A stretch of DNA of 64,000 nt from Hormiphora californensis (lineage: Eukaryota > Animalia > Ctenophora): the NCBI GenBank assembly GCA_020137815.1, contig CM035351.1, positions 9,796,001-9,860,000 on the forward strand, in the 5' to 3' direction. Positions 23,635-29,634 of the stretch are shown here, one piece after another. Position 1 is the stretch's first letter; every line of letters starts with the position of its first letter. Both the position numbers and the translations under genes were made by a program. The notes beneath the pieces are model-generated. The model made no database searches and was not told the DNA's origin. It saw nothing but the letters and a program-made list of their open reading frames with translations.

Positions 23635-25488
23635 ATTACCCTCCCGGTAAATCGGGGCCCGTTTCATATTTTTCTTAATTTTCTTATCATTTTCATTTGG
23701 CCAGTTTATATATCACCATAATAATTGTATTATGTTAAAATTATGTTAATAACTAACAGAATTGTAATTTTGCAAATATTCTTGTTTTATTTAAAACGTT
23801 TGTAAGTGAGAGTGGACCGACACAGAATTACACAGAAGATTATTGTAGGTAGTAGAGAAAAGTTATCTGAGCATTTTGCATTTTCCCGCTTAAAATTGGC
23901 CCTTCGATCACGGAGATATTTTTGATACAACGGGAGAATTTCTTTCTGTGTATTCTCTCTGTAGGCAGCAAATTGGTGATGTCATTCTCCAATTTTAAGG
24001 CTAGAGGGGGGGGGGGTCGACCGATTTTTGACCCCTATTTTGGACCATTTTTGGGGTTACCATCATGTGATAGCGCTTGGCATACTGGACCAGATGGATA
24101 TGACAGAATCGATTTTGCACGAACGGTCTGGAAAAAAATGGTGTTAACTTTAGGTCTGAAATAAATGTAAACCCCATTATTTTAGGACTGGTAGATAGGG
24201 GTTAGAATACCCAATCAAGTGTCAAACACTTTGTCTTATCAAGAGGGATCACTCTGCAAGTTTTACATTATAAGTCCAACTGGTCTTTGAATTATTTGGG
24301 GTTAAAGGGCCTAAAAACCCAAATTATATTTATTATTTTGAACACTCCATCGTAACAAGCATGATATTGGAGTCCCAAAAAACATGGGTACATACCAAAC
24401 GGGCCCCAGGTGAGCCAGGGGGGAGCCCCTCAAGTTGGGGCCATTTGGGGTCCACTTGTAAACACGCTTGTACTACTTGAAATGCTAACAATATGATCCT
24501 CTCTCAAATATAAAATTTAGGATAGAAACTATCCTTGTGTTATAGTCGATTTCATAATCTTTCTCATCAATTATTATCCTTAAAAACTAGGAGAAAAAAT
24601 ACCAGAATACAGAGACAAGAAAGATTATGTGCTCACCTGAAAAACAAGGCTAAATTTTACCCAAAACTTCAAATTTCAGATAGGATCATATTGTTAGCAT
24701 TTCAAGGAGTACAAGCACGTTTACAAGGGGACCCCAACTCGGCGCCAACTTGAGGGGGCTCCCCCTGGGCTCACATTGGGCCCGTGGGGCGTGTGCCTAT
24801 GTTTTTTGGGACTCCAATAGCATGCTTGTTACGATGTAGTGTTCAAAATTAAGGTCAGAGGGGGGGGGTCCGGGGTATAAAAAGTCACTTTCGGTATCTG
24901 GTCCGGCTCGAAGAGCCGGACCAGATGACATACTTAGAATCGATTTAGCGCGCACCGTTAGGGAGAAAATTGAGGTTAACTTTTGGCCCAAAATCAATGT
25001 TAACCTCTCTAATTCTTAAAGATCAGGTATTGAAACAATAAAAACTATTCTAAAAGTAAGGTATCACTAACTAAGGAGAGCATGTGTGAGCAATTATATG
25101 GCGTAAAACTGTGTTTTGAGTGTAACGATTTTTGATTGAGGCTTCCGTTCTCAAGATATTGAGGTTAACGTCGAAAAAACATCAGGTGTGAAATATGTTA
25201 ACCTCAATATCTTGGGAACGGAAGCCTCAATCAAAAATCGTTACACTCAAAACAGGGTAGGTCTGAATTTAGGGTAGGTCCGTAACGTATCGTTTATCAA
25301 ACCATTGCAATTCGAGATTAGGTCGCTGGACCGAGTCCCGTATCTCGTATCAACTCATTACAATTCGAGGTTAGACACAAATTAGATCACTGAACCGCGT
25401 CCCATATCTCGTATTAAGGCCAGAGGGGGGGGGGTCCGAGGGTCAAAAAGTATACTTTTCTGAGGTTTACACATGTGAGAGCTTTCGG

Positions 25489-25514
25489 CACTACTTTAAA
25501 CAAATTAATTTGAG
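25489..25514 (+). other. Relict spliced-leader exon (3' 26 nt)
   Basis: CACTACTTTAAACAAATTAATTTGAG matches, from memory, the 3' part of the Pleurobrachia/Hormiphora SL. It is followed by GA, not a GT donor. Confidence 0.8.
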
Positions 25515-25584
25515 GACAATGTCCTTGGGTTAATCAGCCTGTTTTAGCATGGATTTTAGGATGGGCTGCTAGGATACCTCAAAT

Positions 25585-25998
25585 ATGGACCTAGACAACA
25601 CTCCCCTCGACCAAATCTTTACTCGTGTGTCCTCCCCTGCGTTGGAGAGAATCATACTACTGGCGCAACAGGAGTTGGAGAGAAGAAAGAAGTTTGGGGT
25701 TCCGAAAAAGGATCCCAGCAAGTATGTTACGTTTCATGGGAGGGGAGTCCCTGAAGTTGACTCAGAATCGTTACATTGGGAGGTCGAAGACTTTGACCAA
25801 AAAAATACCTGGTTGTCAAACACAGGACTCGGGTATGGATGGGGTAAAGTTCAACTGCCTCCTGTGGATATAGCCAAGTACCCCAACATCACGGGATTAA
25901 TGGGGAAATTGAACAGTGAGTTGGGCTGCGGATACAACTCGTGTCTGGTAACCAGGTATAGGAGAGGAGAAGGGGTGCACTACCACTCTGAGTATTAG
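25585..25998 (+). pseudogene. AlkB-like Fe(II)/2-oxoglutarate dioxygenase ORF, truncated at the HxD motif
   Basis: WLSNTGLGYGWG..YPNITGLMGKLNSELGCGYNSCLVTRYRRGEGVHYHS matches the AlkB NSCLxNxY..G..HSD pattern. The distal His and Arg ligands are missing because of the fusion at about 25991. Confidence 0.75.
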
Positions 25999-26540
25999 TT
26001 AAATGCCCCCTAAAGAAGAAGAACCTCTACATTAGTCTAGTTAGATCCCTGTTCGAACACTGTAGCCAAATATGGCGACCAGTAAGTGATTCAAGTCTGC
26101 TTAAGTTTGAAAGTTTGCAGAAACGTGCCACAAAATGGATATTAGGTGAAACAGACACTAGTTATAATTTAGAAACGTATGTAAAGAAACTCAGGGAGAT
26201 TGACGTACTCCCAATGAATCAAAAATTTCAATATAATGATCTTAAGTTGTTCCATAAAATATTCTATGAAACATCTCCTATAAAATTTCCATCTTTCCTA
26301 CAAAAATACGATCCGGAATCACATTTCAGACGCACCACCAGACAACAAACGAAACGAGACAGAACGAACATTATATGCATTGAACAACCCAGAGTGGACC
26401 TGTTCAAAAACTGTTACTTCTACCGCTGCCACCTTGAGTGGAATTTACTGCCTCAAGAACTGAGAAATACAACCGAACACAATTCATTTTCCTCCAAACT
26501 GAAAGACCATCTCTGGAACGCCTTACATGACACAACTTAA
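25992..26540 (+). mobile_element. LINE (CR1/L2-group) ORF2 C-terminal region, followed by a 3' UTR to about 26890
   Basis: Open frame LVKCPLKKKNLYISLVRSLFEHCSQIWRP..LKFESLQKRATKWIL..LP..DLKLFHKI..YFYRCHLEWNLLP..FSSKLK. Confidence 0.85.
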
Positions 26541-26935
26541 TTCGCCTCTGTGGTGGGGGTCCCTTTCTCTTCCTTTATTTCTGCTTTATCTCTCCCACCT
26601 CCACACATAGCTCATTCTTTACATTGTACTCAAATATGAGGTTTGGAGTGGTGTTGAACAGTTTGAAACAGGACGGGCGCCCCCACCACAGATATGAATT
26701 CTATCTGATATAAATCTCTACCAACAGCCGACGGTATACTAAATTTTGGATGGGGATCATGGGGGAGGGGTGGGGGACTAGGAAAAATGGGCAAGGGTAA
26801 GTAATTATTTTTATCATTAATGAGTGAATTAAAATTAACCAACTAGTCTAATGTGAATAGCCTTATAGCTATTTCTATTTTTATTTAGCTATTAAAAGTA
26901 TACTATATTAGTCTGTTTGTCCGTAGTGTGCGAGA

Positions 26936-27937
26936 CCCGGTGTCCCGATTTTTTTTTCACGTCTGGAATTTTCATTTTGGGAGCTCGTTTTGCTGCAGGA
27001 ATTTTACTATTTGCTGCAGTCATGGATAGGGATTTTACCGTCCTAAAATACCCCGGCAGTCCCAGTACCCCTAACATTGGAATATTTCCCTACTGCAGTC
27101 CCTATATAAGGTTGGAATATTCCTTGGAATATTCCATCTTTGCAGTGCCTGCTGCAGTGCTGCTGCATTAGTGGAAATTCCTTGGAATATTCCATATTTG
27201 CAGTGCCTGCTGCAGTGCTGCTGCAGCAGTGGAAATTCCTTGGAATATTCCATCTTTGCAGTGCCTGCTGCAGTGCTGCTGCAGTAGTGGAAATTCCTTG
27301 GAATATTCCATCTTTGCAGTGCCTGCTGCAGTGCTGCTGCAGCAGTGGAAATTCCTTGGAATATTACATCTCTGCAGTGCCTGCTGCAGTGCTGCTGCAG
27401 CGGTGGAAATTTCTTGGAATATTCCACTCAGGGACTGCAACAGTGACTATAACGATCTCACCCCTTTGTAAAGCTATGGGGAAAAAGAGAGCTATGTTAA
27501 AGTATGAATCTCTCTTTTCTTCCCCTTCCCTGCTGCAGTGCTGCAGCGACTGCAGAGATGGAAAATTCCGAGAAAATTCCACTCAGCCACTGCAACAGTG
27601 ACTATAACGATCTCACCCCTTTGTAAAGCTATGGGGAAAAAAGAGAGCTATGTTAAAGTATGAATCTCTCTTTTCTTTTCCCTTCCCCCTTACTCGACTG
27701 TTGTCGGTGCATTACGCACAACTGGAACATGCCCCAACATATTCTATCTCTGTTACACACTGTTAACACTGCAGCACTGCTGTATCTCTGTGTGTAAGTA
27801 TGGGAAATATCTTCTGCTGCTGCAGCAGCTGCTGCTGCAGTCCCCCAATATTTTTTCATTTTGCTGCAAGGATTTTGTTTTGCTGCAGAATTTTTGCATT
27901 TATCTTTCCTTCATATTCCAGAGATCGGGACACTGGG
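26936..27937. mobile_element. Non-autonomous TIR element with 8-bp TSD
   Basis: TIR ccc(g/a)gtgtcccgat; exact TSD GTGCGAGA on both sides. Confidence 0.85.
27113..27425. repeat. 59-bp tandem repeat, about 5 copies
   Basis: Unit cttggaatattccatctttgcagtgcctgctgcagtgctgctgcagcagtggaaattc. Confidence 0.9.
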
Positions 27938-29634
27938 GTGCGAGAACTGTCTGTGTGTGAATTTTTATAGTATTTTGAGGTGTAAGCGCTCCGTCTATAT
28001 TGACACTCCGTCAATAGGAGCCAACCGGGATATTGTCTTTATATATTGTATATCGATTTTTATCCTTTTTCAAATCAAATCATGATGTAACTCGGAGAAA
28101 GGAAAGTTTTTGGTGGGATAACTGCACACCAAGTGTATCAGAACCCCCTGTTTTTTGAGGTTAACTTTTGACCGAAAATGTAAGTTAACCTCAAAAATCT
28201 TGTATTTATGTCGCCTTCACAGATGAAAATGGTACCAATCGATAGATCTGATCAAGGAGACCAAATGTTTAAAGTTTCAGAGGTCTAAGCCATATAGTTG
28301 TTCGGATATTTGAGGTTAACTTATCACCCAAAAAACAACCTTTTTGGTCTTTTTCACACCTTACTTTTTAAATCGCCACTACATTCAGCTCATAAACGGC
28401 TAAGAGTTGGGCCTTGAAATTTGGCAGGCATGATCCTTAGATAATAAACTGTGCTTTGAGTGTAACGATTTTTGATTGAGGCTTCCGTTCCCAAGATATT
28501 GAGGTTAACATATTTCACATCTGATATTTTTTAGACGTTAACCTCAATATCTTGGGAACGGAGGCTCCAATAAAAAATCGTTACACTCAAAGCACAGTTT
28601 ATTATCTAAGGATCATGCCTGCCAAATTTCAAGGCCCAACTCTTAGCCGTTTATGAGCTGAATGTAGTGGCGATTCGTAAAAATGTTCCAAGTTATTCAC
28701 CAAAAGGCTACTTTTTGGTGAAATATGTTAACCTCAAAATTTAAAGAACTACCAGGAATATCGCCATAAAATTGCTCACAAATGCTCTACTTAGTGATAC
28801 CTTACTTTTAGAACAGTTTTTATTGTTTCAATACCTGATCTCTAAGAATTAGAGAGGTTAACATTGATTTTGGACCAAAAGTTAACCTCAATTTTCTCCC
28901 TAATAGCGCGCGCAAAATCGATTCCGAGTATGTCATACCAGATACCGAAAGTGACTTTTTATACCCCCGGACCCCCCCCCCTCTGGCCTTAACTCGTTAA
29001 CCTCAAATTTATTTCCAGCCATTATGCTCTCTTTTCGGAACGAGCTAACCCGGGTGGGCGAGCTAACAATAGTGAACTTCCATGCGATATCGCGTGCATG
29101 TAATTGCACTATTGTTAGCTTGTTCGCCCGGGTTTGGTACAGTCTGCGACGCGCAGTGTTGAGACGAACACGTTCCGAAAATGCAGGATTAGGTGTAGAG
29201 GTCTGAAACTTGAGCTGACCTTGTAACTAGATCTATCATTCAGTAGGGTATACACTGGCTATTTGAAACAGCTGCTAACTTGAAACAGTGTCTGACAATC
29301 TGAAACACGTGCACTGGTTATTTGAAACGGGTTCCCCCGATCATGTGTTTGATATTTTACATTGCGTGTTATCTGCTCTCTGATTGGGTGATATCGTGTG
29401 ACGTGTGCTGCTGCAGCAGAGGAGATGTATCTTACACACACTGCAGTGTGTGAAGGGTCTTCATGATTAGATAATAGATAAAATTATGTTGTGTGTAGCG
29501 GTGCCGTTTGTACACTGTACCCAGACAGACAGACAGAGGGAGAGATAGAGCCGTTAATTGTAGTATTGAACCTAAATACACACTTTTCACTTGTCAGAGT
29601 ACTACAATTGATTCTTTTTTACATTGAAAAGATC

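Follow-up and report, generated by a model that had tools for sequence, protein, structure and literature searches.

The stretch analysed here, which we call the window, comprises 64,000 nucleotides of the Hormiphora californensis genome (assembly GCA_020137815.1, contig CM035351.1, positions 9,796,001 to 9,860,000) and holds, at 25481-28082 on the + strand, a single dead copy of a long interspersed nuclear element (LINE), internally deleted and interrupted by a transposon. In order, the copy consists of a head derived from the host spliced leader (SL), a 70-nt untranslated region (UTR), 135 codons of the first open reading frame (ORF1), a deletion, 182 codons of ORF2, a 3′ UTR and a tail. The head (25481-25514, +) covers SL positions ~10-44 in an alignment of the 5′ ends of 18 copies, carries the variant TTTCGG|CACTAC... 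and has 1 T deleted in its T-run. As the first-pass annotation of this DNA had noted, its last 26 nt (25489-25514) end in TTTGAG without a GT donor. G-A comes next, and the 26-mer exactly matches the 3′-terminal 26 nt of the published 44-nt H. californensis SL (PMC8527503). The limit drawn there was too narrow, as the 8 bases upstream of the 26-mer are also leader-derived and place the 5′ boundary at ~25481 (SL position ~10). The 70-nt 5′ UTR is present as described (25515-25584, +) and shares 99% and 98% identity with two relatives, L049 and L050. From the ATG at 25585 runs an ORF1 remnant (25585-25991, +) that retains the first 135 codons of a 469-aa ORF1, is 97% identical to the ORF1 of L050 and breaks off just past the H-S of an HxD motif ('...GVHYHS'), with an out-of-context stop at 25996-25998; the AlkB-like frame cut at its HxD motif, as first reported, represents the N-terminal 135 aa of an ORF1 of AlkB type (25585-25998). 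The abrupt join that had been put at about 25991 falls at 25991|25992 (junction 25990-25992, +), where 4,026 bp are absent relative to L050 and a 2-nt microhomology, GA, is found. The C-terminus of ORF2 follows on the same strand, as had been read (25992-26540, +), with 182 codons open to the natural stop at 26538-26540; this domain lies downstream of the reverse transcriptase (RT), and both the 1,152-aa ORF2 of L050 and the family 2 ORF2 end in sequence homologous to it. The element had been thought to end at 26890. Its 3′ UTR in fact runs to 26935 (part 1, 26541-26935, +, 97-100% identity with 12 other copies), is broken by a 1,002-bp non-LINE element with terminal inverted repeats (TIRs; 26936-27937, no strand assigned) and resumes at 27938-28082 (+), where part 2 and a (CAAAT)n tail form the true LINE 3′ end, a 100% match to the 3′ end of L025.

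Relatives of this copy are numerous, and the full-length ones measure ~5.6 kb including the tail, with a spacing of ~5.4 kb between paired 5′ and 3′ matches on C1 (three times), C2, C3, C5, C7 and C11. A protein search of the species' own genome yields ~35 loci matching ORF1, in at least four families and on most chromosomes, many of them with open frames of 461-539 aa. For the 5′ half of the window copy (25489-25990) there are two near-identical relatives, on C9 (L002/L049, 99%) and C5 (L003/L050, 98%), and ~15 more distant ones; for the 3′ half (25992-26890) there are 12 other copies at 97-100% and ~15 at 84-85%. Some of these 3′ copies do not differ from the window copy at all (100% identity), so the LINE group was active recently. 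Both frames of the full-length L050 (C5:8600500-8610499) are open, ORF1 for 469 aa counted from its ATG and ORF2 for 1,152 aa; in the latter Pfam recognises Exo_endo_phos (33.8 bits) and RVT_1 (107 bits), that is, an apurinic/apyrimidinic endonuclease (APE) and an RT; L055 is similar. The ORF1s of L052, L054 and L055 are 66%, 42% and 40% identical to that of L050, and represent three further families of the same architecture. Damage varies from copy to copy: L049 has a separate, smaller internal deletion of 3,229 bp, L051 and L009 are deleted in other ways, and the family 1 copies are dispersed and 5′-truncated at differing points. The (CAAAT) tail is present as 1-4 units in 11 family 1 and 15 family 2 copies, beyond which the flanks diverge. 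The group thus displays the marks of APE-type LINEs, namely APE and RT in ORF2, variable 5′ truncation, a shared 3′ end and a simple-repeat tail. We also observed that L050 is 98% identical to the window copy over the first 510 nt and 84% over the last 900 nt, 84% being the level of the family 2 copies there; the difference between its two ends suggests that 5′ and 3′ parts may have been swapped modularly between subfamilies.

These relatives bear directly on two models that the first-pass annotation had offered. In the first, a LINE family carries an AlkB domain in ORF1 and has its RNA SL-trans-spliced, the window copy being internally deleted. This model foresaw multi-copy elements of 5-7 kb, and elements of ~5.6 kb with the AlkB ORF upstream of an APE-RT ORF2 ending in this same 3′ end were indeed found. 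In the second, the locus is a one-off chimera made when a LINE RT switched templates onto a trans-spliced host AlkB mRNA. LINE reverse transcriptases do switch templates, and the abrupt 25991|25992 join with its 2-nt microhomology is of the kind that such a switch would leave. In full-length copies of four families, however, the AlkB ORF continues into an esterase and then into APE and RT, as it does in L050; the join is an internal deletion relative to both L050 and L049; and no host-gene-like version of the 5′ part exists, its three near-identical copies all being SL-headed LINE copies. In the other two the halves are not adjacent (no junction-spanning search was made). With AlkB and LINE linked in ~35 loci, the chimera is refuted as proposed and we give it next to no chance. 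The 4,026-bp loss would instead reflect a microhomology-mediated jump or a later deletion, and the window copy would be a non-functional internal-deletion product that was afterwards struck by a DNA transposon.

Sequence motifs and structure prediction indicate that the ORF1 protein (ORF1p) is an ALKBH2/3-like Fe(II)/2-oxoglutarate dioxygenase joined through a Pro-rich linker to an SGNH esterase. In L050 the ORF1 scores 41.0 bits for 2OG-FeII_Oxy_2 (PF13532; cut-off 31.2 bits) and 46.5 bits for Lipase_GDSL_2 (cut-off 32.9 bits), and full-length ORF1s of all four families pass both thresholds (41-60 and 36-47 bits, respectively), with AlkB scores of 47.6-59.8 bits for L052, L054 and L055. The AlkB assignment made from the window therefore holds for the full-length relatives, whereas the window fragment alone, at 14.1 bits, stays under the cut-off. 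Across 13 aligned ORF1 proteins the iron triad (H134, D136, H195) and the RxxxxxR arginines (R205, R211) are invariant, as are the serine, aspartate and histidine of the SGNH domain. A profile of the ORF1 family searched against PDB finds ALKBH3 (1.1e-10) and ALKBH2 (~1e-9), and E. coli AlkB weakly. The AlphaFold (AF2) model of ORF1 has a mean predicted local distance difference test score of 68.8, both domains lying mostly at 75-90 and the AlkB domain at ~80-90, and Foldseek matches it to ALKBH2 (template-modelling score 0.69-0.74, E 2e-11), followed by ALKBH3, AlkB and SGNH esterases. The AlkB domains of viral polyproteins match the model about as well as cellular ALKBH2 does, and a viral fold library could not separate a viral from a cellular origin of the domain. 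Outside H. californensis, a Pleurobrachia bachei protein is 90% identical to ORF1 and is one of only six clusters in a 5.8-billion-protein database; ESM Atlas clusters with both ORF1 domains are most frequent in Ctenophora. Separately, open frames of 561-601 aa in the own genome (C3:8293670-8294302, C5:1176766-1177398, C15:12904-13530, C1:10045788 and C2:9614385) resemble ORF1 in its AlkB part alone (29-35% identity), and an ESM Atlas cluster of ctenophore proteins of ~703 aa carries PF13532 alone; the AlkB-only frames may be other AlkB-bearing elements or host genes.

The second unusual feature of the element is its head. With at most one mismatch, the 26-mer occurs 620 times in the 110.7-Mb genome (reversed control, 0), far more often than chance would give. 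The published assembly measures 110 Mb in 44 scaffolds and was described as having 718 genomic copies of the leader, which 56% of Iso-Seq reads also bear (PMC8527503). When the 5′ ends of 18 LINE copies from four families are aligned, the leader is common to all up to TTTGAG and the sequences diverge immediately after it; upstream, the leader is raggedly truncated at SL positions 2-15, the flanks are unrelated and no copy has a parental 5′ flank. Our picture of this genome's SL RNA genes comes from counts, matches to short patterns and a proxy, the metagenome contig L117, whose positions 1-1945 hold two tandem units of an SL RNA gene and a 5S rRNA gene (5S, 106 bits); here the exon boundary reads TTTGAG|GTAAG and is followed by a CUUUUGG Sm-like site in the SL RNA. 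The corresponding SL RNA and 5S array of the own genome lies at C13:3189106-3195887, with a unit of ~750-810 bp, and the SL RNA gene proper, taken as its upstream region, its exon and ~80 nt of intron, is found again at 93-96% identity in divergent pairs near C5:6431354, C9:4528298 and C11:221870 and as a single locus near C12:4023271. True SL RNA genes number ~20, in a 5S-linked tandem array, a few divergent pairs and one further locus. Among the 64 matches listed, the dispersed leader matches consist of the exon only, and all dispersed leaders inspected (21 in the genome, and 10 marine contigs with sequence upstream of the leader) stand at LINE heads, which suggests that the ~600 other leader copies in the genome are for the most part retrocopies and not SL genes. 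Past TTTGAG, the LINE sequence shows no resemblance to the SL intron of L117. In full-length copies the host SL exon makes up the first ~44 nt. Because the join is exact at the exon/intron boundary and brings no intron sequence with it, the LINE head is a splice product, fixed in DNA when an SL-trans-spliced LINE RNA was reverse-transcribed.

Other LINEs share the habit. The canonical leader, here too raggedly truncated at its 5′ end, heads at least three other LINE groups. Three leader-headed families (L083/L150 with L071 and L143, L080, and L099) have APE-RT ORF2s 24-27% identical to that of the AlkB-LINEs. Counted by group, the leader-headed LINEs comprise a family with a putative PHD-finger-like Cys/His motif after the leader (L044:3547-3895), a group with overlapping ORF1 and ORF2, and a group judged by eye to have a coiled-coil, RRM-like ORF1 (L049:3192-3217 on the - strand and downstream, L146, L112, L104, L062 and L141), in relatives of which Pfam found no domain. 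In L062 and L141 the leader sits at the contig end, as in a transcript, and is followed by an ORF; their assignment to the coiled-coil RRM-like group is by a shared nucleotide motif, with no Pfam match. Exon-only leaders also often form head-to-head inverted pairs 15-75 bp apart (for example C1:3434329/3434370, C2:3466799/3466889, C2:6598744/6598799, C2:8210001/8210071, C3:400017/400066 and C3:1526725/1526768), an arrangement not expected of independent retro-insertions.

Directly downstream of the leader the AlkB-LINEs carry a sequence complementary to it. In the window copy a 13-bp hairpin (25505-25533, +) pairs 25505-25517 with 25521-25533 around a loop at 25518-25520; the 5′ arm takes in the final 10 nt of the SL and the 3 nt with which the LINE begins, and the 3′ arm is an anti-SL stretch in the UTR. 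The hairpin is found in all four families, with the anti-SL stretch 3-5 nt downstream, and in an alignment of five sequences all 65 of 65 cells are standard pairs. Six of the pairs show variation confined to the UTR side, each time from Watson-Crick to wobble or back, and one is compensatory (A-U to U-A), within the LINE's own three bases. As controls, sliding the partner by 1-3 columns lowers the pairing to 28-55%, and shuffled columns reach the observed score in 33 of 500 shuffles. The duplex energy between the leader 3′ end and the first 40 nt downstream beats that of shuffled sequences in each of the four families (p = 0.014, 0.042, 0.002 and 0.002), and the 13-bp hairpin appears in every minimum-free-energy fold; the whole 5′ region of family 2 folds no better than shuffles (z = -0.49). 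Over four independent families the support for the hairpin is good, not overwhelming. It buries the leader/LINE junction, including the terminal AG. Long-range pairings of the G's by which AlkB-LINE heads depart from the canonical leader were considered and dropped, as they differ between families, and the idea that the hairpin is a copied SL RNA stem-loop was rejected, the L117 intron being unlike the LINE UTR.

A further alternative is an association with SL genes at the DNA level, in which the head would stem from site-specific insertion, in the manner of SLACS, CZAR and NeSL, which insert site-specifically into SL genes, or from a captured SL gene segment that includes its stem-loop. The fold of the head into a stem-loop involving the exon 3′ end, and the GT that follows the leader in families 3 and 4, speak for this origin. 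Against it, the copies are spread over nearly all chromosomes with unrelated upstream flanks and ragged leader truncation, no L117-like SL intron follows TTTGAG, and SL genes have no anti-SL motif within 14 nt of their GTA (SL+GTA followed by the motif within this distance gave 0 matches in the genome). We regard a DNA-level origin as very improbable.

The leader of the AlkB-LINEs is not quite that of the host. At leader positions 9, 10, 17 and 18 the heads show A>G changes, their sole departures from the canonical leader (the 5′ ends compared include L005, L006, L009 and L014-L018). Genome-wide, TTTCGG followed by the 26-mer occurs at 15 sites, and all 15 are AlkB-LINE heads of families 1-3; the other informative heads read GA (L006) or AG (L018, family 4), and none reads AA, so that the canonical letters at positions 17-18 occur in 0 of 17. 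By contrast, the sites at which the leader is followed by GTA, as in SL RNA genes, have TTTCAA before the 26-mer in 14 of 14 cases, and 95 of 100 long genomic leader copies (the first 100 of 409) are fully canonical. Marine contigs with the 26-mer (n = 96) mostly have it at the contig end, as assembled transcripts would, and the canonical leader is present in 43 of the 43 transcript-like ones whose upstream letters are readable. In run X4, which bears the same species label, SL-bearing contigs cease to match exactly at the variant site. None of the 96 contigs with the plain 26-mer carries an AlkB ORF1, and a metagenome scan with a hairpin-shaped pattern for AlkB-LINE heads gave 0 matches. Most of family 2 shows GG..GG, family 3 and L009 show AG..GG, and family 4 shows ..AG, a distribution that fits stepwise substitution along the LINE tree. 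Because neither the SL RNA genes examined nor the transcript-like contigs have the private variant, we strongly infer from these sequences that the AlkB-LINE leader is probably a heritable 5′ module and would not be renewed by trans-splicing in each cycle. A single capture in a common ancestor followed by vertical transmission is the simplest reading. Of the first model introduced above, the architecture therefore stands, an AlkB ORF1 in a multi-copy, SL-headed LINE of which the window holds a deleted copy, while its ongoing trans-splicing probably does not, given the private variant in 17 of 17 heads; a leader added afresh should match the current SL RNA pool, and the GG variant is confined to AlkB-LINE heads.

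The same data can be turned the other way. If each cycle brought a fresh round of trans-splicing, using for instance the AG with which the DNA-encoded leader ends, adenosine-to-inosine (A-to-I) editing or an unsampled SL RNA gene variant would account for the A>G changes. The exact join at the SL exon boundary would follow, as would a leader whose 3′ 26 nt are invariant across families that share 40-66% ORF1 identity and have barely alignable UTRs, and a hairpin that changes on its UTR strand only. Other LINE families do bear the canonical leader, every variant site shows A>G, the states forming a mosaic over the same sites, and transposable element (TE) transcripts bearing an SL are known in Hydra (PMC12220107). 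Against fresh addition stand the 0 of 17 canonical heads at positions 17-18, set beside ~95% of genomic copies, 14 of 14 gene sites and 43 of 43 contigs. Editing, moreover, would have to be near-complete at three sites in every copy, and no robust helix is predicted around the variant sites. We judge renewal in each cycle unlikely, with a real but small share of the probability.

We favour, at a probability of roughly 0.7, the reading that the locus is a dead copy of an APE-type LINE with an AlkB-esterase ORF1, whose SL head was captured once and has since been inherited together with the hairpin module. Several observations weigh against this reading or parts of it. An invariant SL strand with variation on the UTR strand only would also be given by a leader supplied fresh in trans. 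Uniform A>G at four sites may be an A-to-I editing footprint instead of a mark of inheritance, and the deviations within family 2 (L009, L006) hit the same four sites and revert to A. Variants of the SL RNA gene may have been lost from a collapsed assembly. Four sequencing runs gave no usable coverage of the LINE, contigs of X4, the only species-labelled run, covering its body almost nowhere, so that any transcription start or current activity of the element is putative. Target-site duplications (TSDs) were not consistently found, either at the window copy or at 6 family 2 copies. Placement in the CR1/L2 group is suggested by features, namely the esterase ORF1, the tandem-repeat tail and a C-terminal ORF2 motif, the database names of ORF2 relatives being uninformative as to clade, and the demethylase activity and substrate of the AlkB domain are predicted.

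Under single capture and inheritance, a LINE RNA would once have been SL-trans-spliced and reverse-transcribed, which would have fixed the leader in DNA as the 5′ end of the element. The RNA templates of new copies would then start at SL position 1-2 and bear the element's own leader; no copy has a parental 5′ flank. The SL and hairpin module may define or protect the RNA 5′ end, acting either as an internal start-site element of the Pr77 kind or as a mimic of host mRNA 5′ ends, and the hairpin could hide the junction AG from the splicing machinery. The AlkB domain, for its part, might strip methylation of the 1-methyladenosine/3-methylcytidine (m1A/m3C) type, possibly also N6-methyladenosine (m6A), from the LINE RNA or the first-strand cDNA, so that neither lesions nor host marks would block reverse transcription. 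The most far-reaching form of this proposal is that a LINE lineage made the SL exon its own 5′ module, locked in a co-evolving hairpin that sets the start or disguises the RNA without trans-splicing, and that it is the first known LINE group with a demethylase ORF1p, which clears RNA or cDNA; we put this forward tentatively, as possible and short of probable.

The DNA around and within the copy was also not of one kind. The first-pass annotation had placed the element inside DNA of miniature inverted-repeat transposable elements (MITEs); repeats are indeed present, and they do not form a single surrounding, as a foldback repeat at 25112-25254 is separate and the 3′ MITE is inserted into the LINE. 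The foldback has 58-nt arms, 98% complementary and 27 nt apart, and a second copy lies ~360 bp downstream of the LINE 3′ end (28446-28500+). Rfam gave no match within the LINE when run on 25000-28400, and the miRNA-precursor matches drawn by the neighbouring foldback were all below gathering scores. The nested element is flanked by an 8-bp TSD, GTGCGAGA, at 26928-26935 and 27938-27945, ends in TIRs of 14 nt each, CCCGGTGTCCCGAT and ATCGGGACACTGGG, and contains a tandem array of 58 bp x 5.4 (27113-27426) and a repeat of 155 bp x 1.9. This 1,002-bp element is non-autonomous, and the 8-bp length of its TSD suggests a hAT-type origin.

Were these readings to hold, their meaning would reach beyond the locus. 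AlkB would be a second enzymatic activity in a LINE ORF1p, the esterase being so far the sole exception to the role of this protein as an RNA-binding chaperone. Intact catalytic motifs in at least four families and two genera suggest that methylation of LINE RNA or cDNA may be a real and removable barrier, and its removal by a LINE would parallel plant RNA viruses and one orchid long-terminal-repeat (LTR) element. A heritable SL head with a hairpin would show a new way in which LINEs can retain a defined 5′ end and start site. The ~600-700 published 'leader loci' (718) would be re-read as mostly exon-only, which affects gene models that share a 'first exon'. Within the open-access literature we found no paper that connects AlkB with a LINE ORF1 or with retrotransposons of ctenophores, no account of a private leader variant passed on by a LINE lineage together with a co-adapted hairpin, and no LINE family that combines an AlkB domain with an inherited SL head.

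LINEs of the CR1/L2 group with an esterase-type ORF1p, reportedly described by Kapitonov and Jurka in 2003, are the closest in overall plan. Like zebrafish ZfL2-1 (PMC3905857), the ctenophore elements have two ORFs, with APE, RT and a conserved C-terminal domain in ORF2, an ORF1p whose N-terminal part is helical and which also has a disordered linker and an SGNH esterase with its catalytic residues, a short tandem-repeat tail in place of poly(A), and frequent 5′ truncation. Esterase ORF1s are found in CR1, RTEX and Penelope-like elements, and the esterase has been described as the only enzymatic ORF1 domain (PMC3905857). Unlike these elements, to which it is likened by features, the ctenophore LINE has an ALKBH2/3-like domain before the esterase and a host SL as its 5′ end. 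For the AlkB domain the comparison is with other replicating elements. Plant RNA virus replicases carry AlkB domains, and a role in demethylation has been proposed for viral AlkB. An orchid Ty3/Gypsy element also encodes an AlkB, which is described as ALKBH5-like and whose activity was demonstrated in vitro (PMC9289625). In all three cases an AlkB-fold domain sits in a replicating element that passes through single-stranded RNA; in contrast to the viral and orchid cases, the ctenophore carrier is a non-LTR retrotransposon, the domain is fused to an esterase within ORF1p and its activity is predicted. The nearest solved relatives of the ctenophore domain are ALKBH2/3, in contrast to the ALKBH5-like domain of the orchid.

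For the head, relict leaders are the nearest precedent. Slamovits and Keeling are said to have reported them on dinoflagellate retrogenes in 2008. Dinoflagellate retrogenes with DNA-encoded relict leaders (PMC12014239), SLs on TE transcripts in Hydra (PMC12220107) and annotations of SL-containing retrotransposons in Schistosoma (PMC5832876) agree with the ctenophore case in that trans-spliced RNA is reverse-transcribed, leaving a leader at the 5′ end of the retrocopy, and in that TE RNAs receive an SL. No stacked relict leaders were seen on the ctenophore LINE heads. What sets the ctenophore case apart is that autonomous LINE families would transmit the leader, with a private variant and a co-adapted hairpin in one lineage. 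Pr77 of the trypanosomatid L1Tc/ingi elements, an internal promoter that fixes the 5′ end and binds TBP and SNAP50 (PMC1874656, PMC8190864), is likewise a short conserved 5′-terminal module common to diverged retroposon families in a host with SL trans-splicing. Pr77 is not an SL, however, and its transcripts are unspliced, whereas the ctenophore module is an SL exon with an anti-SL hairpin and a hypothetical promoter activity.

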